Part shown: piece by piece, positions 2,016-12,657 of the stretch
How positions within the stretch are numbered: position 1 is the stretch's first letter
How the letters are laid out: the number at the start of each line of letters is the position of its first letter
Assembly (NCBI RefSeq): GCF_000143415.4
Contig: NW_003314407.1
Coordinates: 186,001-250,000, forward strand
Direction: 5' to 3'
DNA: 64,000 nt
From: Selaginella moellendorffii
Lineage: Eukaryota > Plantae > Lycopodiophyta
Notes under the pieces: model-generated
What the model saw: only the letters and a program-made list of their open reading frames with translations
The model's database searches: none
What the model was told of the DNA's origin: nothing
Program-made: the position numbers and the translations under genes

Positions 2016-5000
2016 TGTAAGATCCAAATGTACAGCTATAATGTCATATATTAATATTAGCATAGTGGGATTTTGATAGCTGTAGAATTGATTTCATTTC
2101 AAACCATTTGCTCATGTATATAAACTAAGGTTTTTGGGTTAATTGATATTCATATTTTTGTATTTTATTTCCATATTTCATACATTCATATTGGTGTAGG
2201 TGAGGGGCAACTTTGATTATCTCTAAGGCATGTTTGGATTTAGGATTTTGATTTAGATTTAGCTTTTGTATTGTTTAGATCTCCCTTTCTTTATAGCTTT
2301 TTTGATTTCTTCTTTTTTACTTTCTTCTTTTCGTTCATCTTCATGGTATAATAATAGCCTCTTCCTTTAACTTTGGAGTAGCAAATGGTGTAGTTGCTCA
2401 ATGTTATGTGGTTATAGTTGAATAATTAAACCCAGTTGATGGCAATATTCATGGCACATGGTACAGCTCTTCCTGCTTTTGATGCCAATCCTCACGTTCA
2501 GCTGAAGTTATTCCATAGATGATGTGTATAATCACTTTATGATAATTGCCTTATATCATTATTAGAATGATGTTTAGCATTTGCGTAGTTTCCCATATGT
2601 CTCTAAGGGACAATACTATAATGGTACAATGGTTTGAGCACAGCCACTTATAAGGATTGGAGCATTCTCCTGAACATCTTTAAATACAAATTTAGACATG
2701 TTAATAATTGTGATAATACCTTCCAACAATTATATTATTTTTGTCAAGGGCCATTTGAGTCAGTGATGCAATTTGGCATCTATTTCTAAAACTTTTTGCT
2801 TCGTGTGGAGCCAAATATGTTGGGGCGGATTAAATTGGGAATGTTGTGGCCAGCATCTTATCAAAATTTTGTAGAACTTATGTATGCACTTGTTTTAACC
2901 ACACTTGACAATGCTCTTTATTTAACACAACGTTATCAGACATTACCTCTTCCACTTCTTATTACACATCCTTTAAATCCACTTCCTATTTGCAATGGTC
3001 CTATTCCAATAAGGTTGATGTTACTTCTATTCGAGTTCAAAGATAAAAGTGAAGATGTGGTTGTGGCCATGATATTTGCTGTTGGGTGTGTGATAAAGTT
3101 GGTCACACTTATTGGTGTTATTGTTGTTTTTTAGATTAGCAACCTCTATTTCCTAGGTAAAGACCTTAGCATCAACAACATCTTATTCGTGCTACTACAA
3201 TAGAAAGTTTAGACACTGAGATGTTTATGGAAAATAAAAAGTCACACGAGTAACAGAGGGTCCTCACGTAAATAAGTCAGTGACCTCTCTATCTTTCTTT
3301 TGAGAGTATTATCAAGGGATTCACTTGGCACCAATTTATTCAGTGTTTACTTTTCAAACTTATTTTTATAACAAAAGGTTTCCTATTATTCTCTCTATGT
3401 TAGTTAATACAAGCATGAGTTTACCTTCTATTTCTTGGCTTATTACCACACATTGCCATCTACATTTGTGTCATGTGGCAAAGTTAGTTTTCATTCTTTA
3501 TGACAACAACCATACATATGTATATGCACGGGATGAGGTGAACCTAGTTATGTATGTGGGCAATTTCAAGCTTGAGCTACAGTTATTGCAAATAATGTTG
3601 AGTTAAGCTTTTGACCTCATCCTTGATATGGATTAGTAATAGCATAATCATGCCAAGTGTGACTTTGAAGCTTCTCCTCATTGTCTTATACTTTTTTATA
3701 TTTCTTCCATTTCTCTCACTTATATTCATTTTCATCCACCTCTGTTTGCATCACTTTTGTCTCCCTATTACTTCCTCTTATATTTCTGTTTTGTTCATTT
3801 ATTCCCTTTTCAAATCCCTCTAACAATCTTTGTATTGTAGTGGTTGATCGGCTCAATAAGGAGTATACTTGTTGCAAATGTGACTTCAAGTATTGAAAAT
3901 TACCTATCGGCTAGTCCTTACGGACACTCTTACCATACTGTCACGATGGCAAGAGGTTAGTATTGCTAATTCCCTTTATTGGCCCCTCTTGTTCAAGTGT
4001 TAGTAAACTAGGCTTAGCATCTGTACTTGGCCGGATGAGCATAAGGAAGGAATTCCTAAGTGTCTATTTAGCTGAGCATACTTGGCCCGGCTTGTTAGTT
4101 CTCTTTTGCACTGTCTTGCATTGGCTTGACAAGAACCCTCGCGTATTGAGATTGGTCCCTCAATATCGCTGAATGATAGCTTACCGTGTCTGCCAAACAC
4201 CCTCGCTATTATGCCCTTTGTATTAGTCTTATTTCGGTCCCAAATGCTATTTATGGAAAGTGTCCAGATTTGCTCATTTGGCATATCTACAGAATGTAGA
4301 GATTGGCTTGAACACAATGGTGTTCGTTCCATATCCAAATTCGCAATCTAGTGCCATTCCATATCTAGTAAGTTTCGAGCTTGTCCCAGAGATTAACTCC
4401 TAATACTAAGGGAGGCTTGGGGTGAAAGCCCAAAGAGTGTGTTCCTCAAGGGGCGGGGGGGAGGGGGGCTATGGGGGGTTCCAAATATATAGTAAGGATA
4501 GTGGGTAGGTCGGGCATGGCCGACCAACTTGAGGCATAGTTTAGCTCTTGCTTGCATGCCTGTTCTTGTTTTGCGTCCGACTTGGGTCTAAGCTCAAATT
4601 CTATTCCATGCTAGTTGGTGGAGTACCCATGTCCTTGCGTTAAGCCACCGGTATGCCGAAATAGCGCCAGACTCCGTTTGGCTCCGTTTTGCGTGCTGGT
4701 CCTAGCATTGGGATGCTAGTTGCTCCAGGATTGTTCCAAATCGCTCCGGGCTCTTGTCCCTTCGCTCCTTAAGCTATATGCTTGGGAGTTGCTCCGTGGT
4801 TCAGTTCCGTTGCTCCTATGCTCCATGCTTGGGAGTTTGGCACTGTTCCTTCATTCAGTGGCCCAAGGCCCTGAACTCATGTTCCACACCACTGTCCTTT
4901 GGACACGTGGCACAAAGAGGGTTTAGGTTTTGCTTCGTGGTCTTATCCTATGGTAAATCACCATAGGATAAAAGGGTCAAAACCACATGCACTACAATAT

Positions 5001-8111: not shown

Positions 8112-8603
8112 TACATGTTTGAATCCAGAACAACACCATTTAAACTTAAGCCAGTTGAGTTGAGAAATTGGTCAACAGAAGAGCATATGGAGTGCTTGTT
8201 TTGGAGCGGGTGACAATGTCACCACTACATTATTATGTGCAAAGAAAACCTACCACAAATTTCTTGCTGCAACAAATGTCCTGCAAACACCAACTTGTGC
8301 TGGAACAGTTAGTCCAGACCAAAAGGAAGAAAAAGAGAAAAACGAAACAACTTAAGTGTACAGACCTATTCTAAACCGCACAGGTTTCCACCGTACAGCA
8401 CCAAAGTCCCCTTGGAACCCACCACCACAGCCACCAGCAGACTATTTAAAACCCAGCACAAAATTAGATGCTGAAAGAACAGAAAAACAAATGCAAGCTC
8501 ACAAATCTGCAACACGAGACTACAGTCCAAACCTTCAAAAGTGTCATTCCGACGACTAAATGACTACCACAACTAGAAGGACAGCGTCTCGTAGGCATCG
8601 AGA

Positions 8604-10350
8604 TTATGACTCCTGCACCGAAAGAGCGCAACTTTTAGACTCTGCTACTTGGTGAAAGCCAACAAATGGAATCTACTTACATCGGGGTCGGTGTTGTAGG
8701 GGCTCTGGATATCGACGCCGATGCCAGCGGGACTTACGGGTCCTGGAGAAGCTTCACGCTTTCCATTGGAGTAGCTTTTCTCTGGCGACAAACTTCGGAC
8801 TGGAGACCGCTCGCTTTTCCTGCAAAGTAGATGAGAAATGTGTCCAGAAGGAGACGTTTCTTACCTTGCTTGCTCCAAAGGACTTGCGTCTCTGTTCGCC
8901 GTCGTCACTGGCCTTGGTGATCCCAACGCTGTTTCCCGGACAGGACTCGATAACCGAGCTGGAGCAGGACTGAAAGAGAGAAAAGAACCTCAAAAAGCGT
9001 GTGCTAAAGATCAGGAGGCAATGCACGCGTACCTTAGTGGTGCTGGTGACGAGTTAGTACGTTCGACGGGCCTTCCTCTTGCCTCGCGATGATCATCTTC
9101 TGCATAGCGGTCCCTGCTCCGGCTCCTACTTCGGCCGCCTCTTCCAACCTCGGCATCAAAGCGATCCCGCTCGTATCTTTCTTTGGTCCGACCAACGTCG
9201 TGTGAGTCCCGGCTTCGTTCATGTTGATGCCTGTAGTCACGTTCGTGTCTATCTCTGCGCTCGTATCTGTCTCTCATGCGATCGTGCTCATAAAAGTGAT
9301 CGTCCCGGCTTCGTTCGTGCTCGTATCTGTCTCTTCCGCGGAAGTTGTCGCGATAATCCCTCCCTCGTCCATACTCTTCCCTGTATCGACTGTGCAAAAG
9401 ATTCACGTCAGCTGCCGCCAACCATTTCTATGAACTGTAAGAAAATGGCCAACCTTGGTCGTCTCGGGCTCCGACTCCGTGACCTGCTGCATATGGACGT
9501 TGTTATTCTTCCACAATATCTGCCAGAAGCAAGCACATTGTTCTGAGCACGATCCGCGAAGAAATGAAGGAAGAAAAACAAGCAGCCACGCAGAAAATCT
9601 AATCATCTAAGACTCCTGCATTTTGAGAGATCAAATCGTGGATCGTGTCGCCTCCCTCCCAAAACAGACTCACATCTTTTCATCGTTCCGACCATACTTT
9701 GCAAACTGTACTGCAATCTGCCTTCCATCAATGGTCATACCTGCGTGATGCTAGGGAAATTAAACACACAACCATGACTTACGTTGATTCAGAGTTCTTG
9801 TCATACTTTGCAAACTGAACCATGATGTTACGTCCGTTCAGATTCTTACCTGCGAAAAAAAACGCGCATTTGTCACTGGAGCTCACGGAAAACAAGAAAG
9901 AACAGCACAAAATGCAATGCATGTACCGTCCAGTCTATCGATCGCCTTTTGTGCTTCATCCACATGCTTGTAGCGTACAAATGCGAATCCTCGTGACTCA
10001 CCAGACCTAGAGAATGGAAGATAGTCAAAAGAGAGCAAAGAAAAAAACCAAACAACCAAAACAAAAACGGTTTATTTTTTGCTCTCTAGCTTACAAACCT
10101 GCGATCTCTGGGGATGAAAATGTCCACAACTTTGCCGTAGCGATCGAAGAGAGGGTAGAGATCATCGGCGGTAGTTCCTGCAGTCCCACATTTTCATTTC
10201 ATTACATCGCTCGCGAATTGGAGATCATGGAAGAGAAAAGGGAGCGATCGATCGATCGATCGATCCAAGCTTACTGAATGTGATGTTGAGGACGAGAAGC
10301 GAGTACGTATCCCGTATGTCGGGCGGGCCGGCACGTCCGAAATGCGACAT
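8604..10350 (-). CDS. SC35: SR splicing factor of the SC35/SRSF2 subfamily (RRM + RS/RD-rich region), multi-exon
   Basis: MSHFGRAGPPDIRDTYSLLVLNITF / RTTADDLYPLFDRYGKVVDIFIPRDRR / GESRGFAFVRY / VQFAKYG, followed by RSRSRS exons. GT-AG introns keep frame to TAA at 8604-8606. Confidence 0.93.
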
Positions 10351-10482
10351 TGTTCCCTCGACAATGGCGCATGCATCCACACAAACCCTAGAACGAAGAA
10401 GAAGAAGAAGAAAGCCAACCACAAATCCAACAGCCCAGATGCGCCCACCGTTCGATCCCCCATCCAACGGCTAGGGATTGGA

Positions 10483-12657
10483 ATGCGCAGGAATGACGCC
10501 TCTATCGATCGAATCGCGCTCGTTTTGCGCGGGTGTGGGCAGTCGCGAGATCTCTCCGCGGCCAGGCGAGCGCACTCTCGGATCCGCGAGCTGGATCTCG
10601 GACCGGACAGGTATCTCGCCAATCTGCTGGTGGAGATGTATGGGCGGTGTGGCTCCGTGCACGAGGCGCAGTGGGTCTTCGATGCGATCCCTCGCCCCAA
10701 TCTCTTCTCGTGGACGCTCATCCTCTCGGCGTATGCCCAGAACGGGTATCTCGCCCGGGCAGCGGCGATCTTCCGCGAGATGCCGCACAGGGACGTGGTG
10801 CTATGGAATTCGATGATGAATTTCCACGCGCAGGCCGGGGACGCGGACGAGGCGAGAGCCATCCTCGATCGAATGCCGGCGCTGGAGACGATCTCTTGGA
10901 ATGCGGTGATCCAGGCGTATGCCCAAGAAGGGCGTGTGGAGGAAGCAGCAAAAGTTTTCATAGAGGTCCCGGAGCGCGATGTGGTGTCGTGCACGACGAT
11001 GATCGGGCTCTACTCCCAATCATCGCAGCCCCAAGAGGCGGAGAGGGTCTTCGATCGAATGCCGGAACGAGACATTGTGTCGTGGAACGCAATGATCCAG
11101 GGATACGCCGACAACAATCGCCCAGACCAGTTCCAGGAACTCTTCAAGAATCTCCCTGAAAAGAATGTGGTTTCGTGGACGAGCATGGTGGCTGCGCTCG
11201 CGCAATTTGGCAAGATCTCTGGTGCCAGAAAGATCTTTGACGTGATGCCGCTGGCGAGCGCAGTAACCTGGAACACGATGCTTCAGGCATATGCCCAAGC
11301 TGGGCATTTGGACGATGCGAGAAGCCTTTTTAATTATATGCCTGAGAAAGATCCTATATCGTGGACAGTGCTACTCATATTGAACGCGCAGAATGGCCAT
11401 CTTGACTACGCAAAGATTTTATTTGAAGCAATGCCCAAGCACAGCCTTGTTTGCCACAATGCAATGATCCAAGCAAATGCCCAGTCGGGTCATCTGGTTG
11501 CTGCAGTAACGCTGTTCTTGGGCGTTGTAGAACGAGACGTGGTATCGTTTAACGTGGTGTTGGCAGCTCTCGCACACTCTTCTAAAGCTGGAAAAGCCCG
11601 CTCTGTTTTCGAGAGGATGCCACAGTGGGACTTGGCGTCGTGGAACACCATGGTTTTTGCATATGCCCAAGGAGGGTATGTTGCTGCCGCGAGAAAAGTG
11701 TTTGATGAGATGAGAAGCTTCCGCGACGTCGTGAGCTGGAACACGCTCGTCTCGGCCTACGCGTCTGTCGGGCGGATGGACAAGGTGGAGGAGATGTTTG
11801 AGAAAATCCCGCAGCGCGGCGTCATCACTTGCAACTCGATGATCGCCGCCTACGCGCAGAGGTGCTGGCGATCGGGCAAGGAAGCGAGAGCTCTCTTCCA
11901 CGCAATGCAAGAGAGGAACCTGGTGACTTGGAACGCGTTGGTCCAGGCTTACGGCATCAACAGACAGCCCCGGGAGGCGAAGGCTGTGTTTGACAAGATG
12001 GCGAGGCACAGTCTCGTTTCTTGCAATGCCATGCTCTCGGCCTATGCTTGTGCTGCTCTCATGGTCGACGCAGCCATGGTGTTCGATCTCATGCCTTACA
12101 AAGACACGGTTTCATGGAACACCTTGATCGCTGGTTATGCTCAGAACGGACACATGAGCTCTGCGTGGCACTTCTTTTCGAATCTCGAGTTCGCCGACTC
12201 CATTTCCTGGAATGCAATGATCGCTGGCTATGCCCAAAACGGGTATAACAAAGAAGCAATCGAGCTAGCCAGGTTGATGGACCTCGATGGCCGCGTGGTA
12301 GCCGACGAAGTCACACTGCTCAGCGTGTTGACGGCTTGCTGCCACAGCGGAGTGATAGAACGCGCTTGGGAGTGTTTCCTGTCCATGCAATCCGATCGTG
12401 GACTGCGTCCACTTCTCGAGCACTACTCGTGCATGGTGGGAATCTTGGGAAAGAATGGACAGCTTGGTCTGGCGAGGGAGCTTATAGAGACGATGCCATT
12501 CGTCCCGGATTCCGTGATGTGGACGACACTCCTGGCATCTTGTAAACTTCATGGTGACGAGGAGATTGCGAGCAGGTCCGCCGAGGAGTCATCCGAGCTC
12601 AGCCAGGCCAACTCGGCTCCTTACATGCTTATCTCCAACATGTACTCGATCGCTTGA
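10483..12657 (+). CDS. PLS-class (SS-rich) PPR protein with E region, no DYW; organellar RNA-editing specificity factor
   Basis: ~31-aa repeats (RDVVSWNAMI..YAQ.G), HYSCMV..LG..G.L and terminal APYMLISNMY. Start placed at MRRND; the upstream in-frame ATG 10342 overlaps the SC35 start. Confidence 0.92.
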   Translation: MRRNDASIDRIALVLRGCGQSRDLSAARRAHSRIRELDLGPDRYLANLLVEMYGRCGSVHEAQWVFDAIPRPNLFSWTLILSAYAQNGYLARAAAIFREMPHRDVVLWNSMMNFHAQAGDADEARAILDRMPALETISWNAVIQAYAQEGRVEEAAKVFIEVPERDVVSCTTMIGLYSQSSQPQEAERVFDRMPERDIVSWNAMIQGYADNNRPDQFQELFKNLPEKNVVSWTSMVAALAQFGKISGARKIFDVMPLASAVTWNTMLQAYAQAGHLDDARSLFNYMPEKDPISWTVLLILNAQNGHLDYAKILFEAMPKHSLVCHNAMIQANAQSGHLVAAVTLFLGVVERDVVSFNVVLAALAHSSKAGKARSVFERMPQWDLASWNTMVFAYAQGGYVAAARKVFDEMRSFRDVVSWNTLVSAYASVGRMDKVEEMFEKIPQRGVITCNSMIAAYAQRCWRSGKEARALFHAMQERNLVTWNALVQAYGINRQPREAKAVFDKMARHSLVSCNAMLSAYACAALMVDAAMVFDLMPYKDTVSWNTLIAGYAQNGHMSSAWHFFSNLEFADSISWNAMIAGYAQNGYNKEAIELARLMDLDGRVVADEVTLLSVLTACCHSGVIERAWECFLSMQSDRGLRPLLEHYSCMVGILGKNGQLGLARELIETMPFVPDSVMWTTLLASCKLHGDEEIASRSAEESSELSQANSAPYMLISNMYSIA

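Follow-up and report, generated by a model that had tools for sequence, protein, structure and literature searches.

A tandem pair of homologous 67-nt exons with the layout of mutually exclusive splicing in the SC35 gene of Selaginella moellendorffii

The stretch analyzed here (the window; 64,000 nt of Selaginella moellendorffii DNA, contig NW_003314407.1) carries on its minus strand a gene for a serine/arginine-rich (SR) splicing factor of the SC35 type, in which exon 4 is present as two adjacent homologous copies, referred to below as A (upstream) and B (downstream). The gene product is identical to RefSeq XP_024522417.1 (P0014; 325 aa, 'serine/arginine-rich splicing factor SC35'), in which the peptide encoded by exon A was matched exactly. 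The protein has one N-terminal RRM (PF00076), then an Arg/Ser-rich region, and an SC35-specific N-terminus, as found in SC35/SRSF2-type factors (the plant SC subfamily), and a protein search with exon 1 as the query retrieved plant SC35 proteins. The transcript starts at 10354 or beyond, and the features of the gene are listed in Table 1.

Exons A (9849-9783) and B (9740-9674) are identical at 41 of 67 nucleotides, ungapped, in register and in the same phase. When every 67-mer of the window was compared, both strands included, the mean match was 17.1 (sd 3.6) and the next best 34, which ruled out a chance similarity between the two exons. Each copy is preceded by CAG and followed by a GTRAGT donor, GTAAGT for A and GTGAGT for B; the splice sites of A are in use, and those of B were unseen in use in the four Selaginella RNA runs described below. 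The peptides share 12 of 22 residues, and the core VQFAKY is the same in both. In a local frame check, the inclusion of A alone or of B alone kept the frame open as far as the normal stop codon (8606-8604), joining A to B gave a stop 10 nt into B, and the omission of both gave a stop 14 nt into exon 5. Being adjacent, homologous, and equal in length and phase, the two copies have the layout of mutually exclusive exons, and double inclusion and double skipping both carry a penalty in the form of a frameshift with an early stop, to which removal of the transcript by nonsense-mediated decay (NMD) would presumably be added. A preliminary description of this DNA, made from the letters alone, had reported two homologous 67-nt exons of the same phase with AG/GT borders lying 42 nt apart, and had stated that including both or neither shifts the frame; the alignment and the frame check confirmed both statements.

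Table 1. Features of the SC35 gene in the window (positions of the window, strand and supporting evidence).
Feature	Position	Strand	Evidence and remarks
Exon 1, coding part	10275..10350	-	Start codon 10350-10348; joint 10177/10275 in 4/4 RNA runs; matches XP_024522417.1 N-terminus
Exon 2 (RRM beta1-alpha1)	10099..10177	-	RNA joints; XP_024522417.1
Exon 3 (RNP-1, alpha2)	9927..10006	-	Joints 10006/10099 and 9849/9927; final base G opens split Gly codon
Intron 3, 77 nt	9850..9926	-	U8 polypyrimidine tract ahead of exon A
Exon 4A, 67 nt, upstream divergent copy, default in RNA	9783..9849	-	Donor GTAAGT; joined to exons 3 and 5 in 4/4 runs; in RefSeq proteins P0014 and P0097
Spacer between copies, 42 nt, GT..AG	9741..9782	-	No joint removing the spacer seen in four runs
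Exon 4B, 67 nt, downstream canonical b-type copy	9674..9740	-	Donor GTGAGT; skipped in sampled RNA; used in JGI v1 model P0096
Intron from B to exon 5, 154 nt	9520..9673	-	Removed in the A isoform together with B and spacer, as one intron of 263 nt; joint 9519/9783 in 4/4 runs
Exon 5, 66 nt	9454..9519	-	Joints 9519/9783 and 9389/9454
Exon 6, Arg/Ser/Asp/Tyr-rich domain	9033..9389	-	RNA joints; protein match
Exon 7	8865..8969	-	RNA joints
Intron 7, 45 nt	8820..8864	-	Spliced in 4/4 runs (joint 8818/8864, cut +1)
Exon 8	8681..8819	-	RNA joints
Exon 9: final two codons, stop TAA 8606-8604, 3' untranslated region at least to 8396	8396..8612	-	RNA joints; frame check

Two further details of the exon copies were considered and dropped. 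GTAAG at the start of exon A was not retained as a recursive splice site, since nearly all SC35 exon 4 copies begin with GT because of the split Gly codon. The codon for Arg-7 (CGN in upstream copies, AGR in downstream ones) was not retained as a marker, since AGR and CGR are one synonymous change apart.

The RNA data consisted of assembled Logan contigs from four runs of four studies, covering positions 8300-10450, and the contigs were shown to be spliced RNA by their joints and by the shares of sequence words present in them (0.38-0.48). Assembled contigs drop rare variants and the tissues of origin are not stated; the absence of a rare B isoform is not demonstrable from such data. In all four runs, exon 3 was joined to A (9927/9849) and A to exon 5 (9783/9519), with B skipped, and the remaining introns, of 97, 92, 77, 64, 63, 45 and 68 nt, were confirmed as well. 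Neither an A-B joint nor the skipping of both exons was found in the contigs of these runs, where NMD could hide such transcripts. Exon B was covered solely by two low-depth collinear contigs (9491-9805 and 9570-9787), representing unspliced RNA or DNA with second-haplotype single-nucleotide polymorphisms. Because all four runs join exons 3, A and 5 and none joins B, A is the default exon in Selaginella, although B is the more canonical copy. The preliminary description had named two outcomes that would speak against its proposal, an exon A that is never included and a dominance of A-B joined transcripts. In the four runs the opposite of the first was observed, A being included in each and the use of B unproven, and no A-B joint was present.

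The annotations of the pair conflict with one another: RefSeq takes A, and does so on both haplotypes, JGI v1 takes B, and the Sphagnum models omit the upstream copy. Exon B is used only in the 2011 JGI v1 models EFJ05957.1 and EFJ07115.1 (P0096), which are truncated to 101 aa and run on into the intron. Besides the JGI v1 B model, the 90% cluster of the gene product contained only the two A proteins of RefSeq, and a search of a 5.8-billion-cluster collection with the 101-aa B model returned only SC35 proteins of other plants.

Apart from the choice of exon 4, the RNA contigs carried second-haplotype variants (9517, 9490, 9318, 9275, 9257, 9248 and others), such as Tyr/Cys at 9517, which shows that the two alleles are both expressed and that each of them uses exon A. 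A minor alternative acceptor within exon 5 (9484/9483; joint 9483/9783) was also observed, which joins A straight to the RS-coding part and removes 36 nt in frame (12 residues). It occurred in one run (X1) only, at a depth of 8 compared to 156+100 for the main junction.

The same layout was found in a second lycophyte lineage and in a moss. In Diphasiastrum complanatum gene O6H91_01G058200 (L004), copies a (10482-10548) and b (10597-10663) are separated by a spacer of 48 nt, and in Sphagnum jensenii (L008) copies a (3044-3110) and b (3162-3228) are separated by 51 nt. All paired exons are 67 nt long with AG and GT borders, and in each of the three species the donor is GTAAGT at the upstream copy and GTGAGT at the downstream one. 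The Diphasiastrum gene has two annotated isoforms, KAJ7569030.1 and KAJ7569029.1, which are identical at 323 of 334 residues and differ only at residues 80-100 through a swap of the two exons; the Sphagnum protein uses b only. Elsewhere in the genes of Diphasiastrum and Sphagnum, introns range from about 270 nt, a figure that still counts some exon bases left unaligned by tblastn, to several kb, and the spacers of 48 and 51 nt are extreme outliers among them. Four JGI peat metagenome contigs (L010-L013) proved to be Sphagnum nuclear DNA with the tandem pair (297-300 of 300 positions identical to S. jensenii). When metagenomes were scanned for spliced contigs with a 22-mer of Sphagnum exon a, four matches were obtained, all of them unspliced genomic DNA, and none bears on the use of exon a.

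Genes with a single copy of exon 4 were found alongside the tandem genes. They are of the b type in a Selaginella paralogue and in Diphasiastrum 08G111400, of the a type in Diphasiastrum 09G003600 and in Marchantia, and of the c type in Riccia (the types are defined below). The search for the exon pair in orthologues, which the preliminary description had proposed, thus gave the pair in Diphasiastrum and Sphagnum and one copy in Marchantia and Riccia. Diphasiastrum 09G003600 (L005) is the homeologue of the 01G gene and has no recognizable downstream copy; only exon a and exon 5 could be aligned between the two. Its a-type exon is followed by 51 nt (18441-18491 of L005) that start with GTGAGT and end with CTGCAG, resembling the spacer of a tandem gene, and no second exon copy follows.

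In an AlphaFold2 model of the protein, exon 4 encodes residues 79-100, which comprise the loop after helix 2, strand β4 (88-93) and the C-terminal extension of the RRM, and the exon aligns with G77-P95 of human SRSF2. This agrees with the earlier assignment of the exon to the last β-strand region of the RRM. The model shows the β-α-β-β-α-β fold, and both versions fold as an RRM, with a mean pLDDT of 81 for the B version compared to 70 for the A version. The B peptide matched SRSF2/SRSF8 (G77-P95/D96) in the PDB with E values of 0.003-0.013, and no PDB match at E<=10 was obtained for the A peptide. Among 150 plant SC35 proteins, Asp was present at position 5 in 149 and Gly at position 17 in all 150; exon B retains both residues, and exon A replaces both. 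The previous suggestion that B is closer to canonical plant SC35 was borne out by these two comparisons.

The core of β4 is common to both versions, which differ in the preceding loop and in the two residues before the equivalent of SRSF2 Pro95 (D-K in A versus G-R in B), so that the B version reads YGRN and the A version YDKN beside this position. Mutations of Pro95 alter the CCNG/GGNG preference of SRSF2 (PMC4863743). The likeness to the human RRM thus extends to the placement of the A/B differences directly before the Pro95 equivalent; plants, in contrast, carry Asn where SRSF2 has Pro. It is reasonable to suppose that the A and B versions may differ in RNA binding or specificity.

Three types of exon 4 were distinguished among the plants compared. 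The a type (YGR[DES]ME) occurs in liverworts, as Sphagnum a and Diphasiastrum a, and, at the protein level only, in Adiantum; the b type (YGRNDE-like) occurs in streptophyte algae, mosses and lycophytes; and the c type (YGPNAE) occurs in liverworts, ferns and seed plants. In a maximum-likelihood tree of twelve 67-nt exons, in which 67 columns are few, the a-type exons of Marchantia, Sphagnum and Diphasiastrum fell on one side of a branch with a support of 82/85, or of 87/88 when Selaginella A was left out. The grouping of both Sphagnum copies that a Sphagnum-only duplication would give was rejected by the approximately unbiased (AU) test (p 0.004), and a clade of the two Diphasiastrum copies was borderline (p 0.055). 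Because the a-type exons group together and a Sphagnum-only duplication is rejected, the duplication most likely predates the split between bryophytes and vascular plants.

The substitution pattern was consistent with long-standing constraint. Selaginella B compared with the exon of Diphasiastrum 08G (Dc08) gave a proportion of synonymous differences (pS) of 0.55 and of non-synonymous differences (pN) of 0.12 (Fisher p 0.003), and compared with Sphagnum b it gave pS 0.72 and pN 0.19 (Fisher p 0.0006). The Sphagnum a exon, which is unannotated, showed pS 0.53 and pN 0.04 relative to Marchantia a (Fisher p 0.0001). For Selaginella A, whose constraint the preliminary description had asked to be assessed, the comparison with the paralogue exon gave pS 0.93 and pN 0.17 (Fisher p 5e-7). 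Synonymous sites are near saturation in these comparisons, and non-synonymous differences are few. Selaginella B is intact and under purifying selection, and it has been protein-coding through most or all of its history, since existence as an intron for most of some 400 million years would not give such pN/pS values.

On balance, we lean toward the view that the pair is an old tandem duplication of SC35 exon 4 built for mutually exclusive splicing, with B chosen when A is suppressed. We considered that such a switch should function as follows. Exon A would be defined by default, aided by the U8 tract and the GTAAGT donor. The only CURAY-like motif in each spacer, identified by eye, is UUAAU in Selaginella, CUGAU in Diphasiastrum and CUAAU in Sphagnum, which places the predicted branch A 20-23 nt from the upstream donor in all three species. 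With U1 on the donor of A, the predicted branch site of B, about 23 nt off in Selaginella, could not be engaged by U2, and A would be spliced to exon 5. Should the recognition of A be blocked, in some tissue, stage or condition outside those sampled, exon 3 would be spliced to B, and the choice of B would lead to an SC35 with YGRN rather than YDKN at its RNA-contact surface. Owing to the length of 67 nt, mRNAs with both exons or with neither would carry an early stop and be cleared by NMD. In this scheme, we infer the use of B in Selaginella, the steric block, the removal by NMD and the difference in RNA specificity.

Polypyrimidine tracts are strong at Selaginella A, strong at Sphagnum b and moderate at both Diphasiastrum exons, and their strength would fit the annotated defaults. 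Exclusivity of the competing-RNA-structure type was set aside, as no docking or selector structures are shared by Selaginella, Diphasiastrum and Sphagnum; only inverted repeats of 9-27 nt were found, in differing places and with no common pattern, and no complementary elements are conserved in the three species. Steric exclusion is plausible across the three lineages because the spacers measure 42, 48 and 51 nt while the other Diphasiastrum and Sphagnum introns are far longer, and it is not secure for Selaginella. Enforcement by a short spacer, as first proposed, therefore gains from the spacer lengths and loses from the splicing of a 45-nt intron in the same Selaginella gene, which is taken up below.

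Several observations weigh against a mutually exclusive switch. No exon 3-B or B-exon 5 junction was found at either border of B in the contigs of the four Selaginella runs, and no B-containing Selaginella protein was found in a 15-billion-protein collection beyond the ab initio JGI v1 model. The isoform pair of Diphasiastrum is a GenBank annotation. When the A-B region was compared with the other haplotype (GL377689.1, L001), 0 of 67 positions differed in B, one in A and one in the spacer, against a background of about 1-2%, and these differences are too few to be informative about constraint. Intron 7 of the same Selaginella gene measures only 45 nt and was spliced efficiently, and in every run, so a spacer of 42 nt may be no hard steric limit in this species, and the frameshift may be a more important safeguard there than the steric block. 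Finally, Selaginella A fell outside the a-type clade, as a long branch whose attachment to the exon of the Selaginella paralogue was weak (69/92). The preliminary description was thus supported in part: the junctions of A with both neighbors were present in all four runs, and those of B and between A and B were not; of its two isoforms, the A isoform was found throughout and the B isoform was unseen in the Selaginella contigs. Mutually exclusive use draws its support from the annotated swap isoforms of Diphasiastrum, the pair in Sphagnum and the constraint on B, and the A-only contigs of Selaginella stand against it.

The position of A in the tree bears on where the Selaginella pair came from. 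Exon A could be a lineage-specific re-duplication, or could have undergone gene conversion by a b-type exon, for instance the one in the paralogue, with the geometry of the pair being convergent; this concerns the origin alone and is compatible with any functional reading. The A peptide is identical to the paralogue exon (P0103) at 16 of 22 residues and to B at only 12 of 22, it is without the a-type motif YGR[DES]ME, and the tree joins it to the paralogue exon as stated. We nevertheless regard an independent origin as rather doubtful. The divergent copy lies upstream, the donors are GTAAGT and GTGAGT, the exons are 67 nt long and the spacers measure 42-51 nt in all three lineages, and a long branch makes the placement of A unreliable. 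A clade of all a-type exons including Selaginella A is neither supported nor rejected (AU p 0.35), and for a clade of A and B the rejection is borderline (p 0.054). The orthology of Selaginella A with the a-type exons is favored by its position, its donor and its geometry.

As regards function, B might be a recently silenced relic in Selaginella, A having taken over and B now forming part of the 263-nt intron without having decayed yet. The splicing of A alone in runs from four separate studies and the A-only RefSeq models fit this proposal, and the loss of one copy does occur, as Diphasiastrum 09G003600 lacks the downstream copy and Marchantia has only an a-type exon. We consider it unlikely, however, as B retains its exact length, its frame, both splice sites and the invariant or near-invariant residues, with pN far below pS, and on a branch of about 400 million years its silencing would need to have happened very recently; contigs of this kind, moreover, leave room for an isoform that is rare or confined to certain tissues. 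Regulated unproductive splicing is a known feature of SR genes, and it is conceivable but improbable that B is a poison exon whose inclusion together with A yields the early stop and autoregulates SC35 with no second protein being made: a 45-nt intron can be spliced in this gene, so the removal of the 42-nt spacer is possible, yet no A-B joint was observed in the four runs (a weak point, as NMD would hide it), a poison exon has no need for a conserved protein sequence whereas B is constrained on its amino acids and keeps the canonical RRM residues, and one annotated full-length isoform of Diphasiastrum has the downstream exon in place of the upstream one.

The end of exon 4 and the neighborhood of the gene gave some additional observations. 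Exon 4 ends in AT/GTRAGT in nearly all plant SC35 genes examined (9674-9671 in the window; L002-L009), so that a transcript retaining the intron that follows would continue ATG TGA or ATG TAA and stop at once. In many plants, SC35 products consisting of the RRM alone (about 101 aa) are annotated, and a conserved truncating intron-retention event may exist after exon 4. In Chara braunii CBR_g34604, two annotated products (P0037 and P0291) part right after exon 4 (MGRYMV... versus IQRGRIT...), so that alternatively spliced transcripts at this boundary may be older than land plants. A long intronless open reading frame lies on the plus strand at 10342-12657, in head-to-head orientation to SC35; it has 771 aa when counted from its first ATG, and 724 aa in the annotation of the other haplotype. 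From its repeat pattern, judged by eye, it looks like a PPR protein, and it probably shares a promoter region with SC35, as no more than about 130 nt separates the two start codons.

Tandem homologous exons are well known from other systems. In vertebrate U2AF1 (U2AF35), exons Ab and 3 form such a pair, with one strong default and removal of both-exon transcripts by NMD (PMC5224494). Like the SC35 pair, they belong to a core splicing factor and encode part of an RRM-like domain. Unlike it, U2AF1 is an animal gene of a different protein family, its inter-exon intron is not reported as too short (PMC5224494), compared to a spacer of 42-51 nt in SC35, and it is regulated by branch-point and polypyrimidine organization together with trans factors.

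For exons 2 and 3 of α-tropomyosin, Smith and Nadal-Ginard reportedly showed in 1989 that the downstream branch site is too near the upstream donor for joint engagement. The predicted branch A of SC35, 20-23 nt from the upstream donor in three species, resembles this arrangement. The steric block in SC35 is only a proposal, however, and the 45-nt intron spliced in the Selaginella gene points to an unusually low size limit there.

Conserved splicing events of plant SR genes mostly yield early-stop, non-productive transcripts. Old events of alternative splicing in long introns of the RS2Z, SCL and RS subfamilies are common to mosses and flowering plants (PMC1636356, PMC7105729). The SC35 pair shares with these the old alternative splicing inside an SR gene, and differs in that it would swap a protein segment within the RRM. 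Surveys of plant SR proteins that include Selaginella and Physcomitrium make no mention of mutually exclusive exons in the SC subfamily (PMC3173450, PMC7105729, PMC1636356). The literature check that the preliminary description had called for found, in the full-text literature, no published report of the exon pair or of mutually exclusive exons in plant SC35, nor any paper in which these gene identifiers occur. Systems of this kind are well known; the present one, in a plant SR protein and common to one moss and to two lineages of lycophytes, seems to be new.

Tentatively, and with somewhat less than even confidence, the a/b pair of exon 4 can be viewed as a mutually exclusive switch inherited from the common ancestor of land plants that toggles the RNA-contact surface of SC35. 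It would have been kept in Sphagnum, Lycopodiaceae and Selaginella and split elsewhere into single-exon genes: a-only and c-only genes in liverworts (at the DNA level), a and c in ferns (from proteins only), the c type alone, derived from b, in seed plants, and, in Diphasiastrum, paralogues with only a or only b next to the a/b gene. Plants seldom have mutually exclusive exons. If this view is true, the pair would rank with the oldest cases known in which alternative splicing changes a plant protein, and would clearly exemplify an interchange of alternative splicing with gene duplication. The scattered occurrence of genes with a, with b or with both makes it possible to test how the two processes replace each other. 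The conserved layout of 67 + ~45 + 67 nt provides a simple plant system for testing steric and NMD enforcement of exclusivity. SC35, a master regulator of splicing, appears to have a choice built into the part of its RRM that adjoins, in human SRSF2, the residue whose mutation re-tunes exon recognition, and should both versions be produced, plants without seeds could re-programme the target choice of SC35 through the splicing of its own pre-mRNA.

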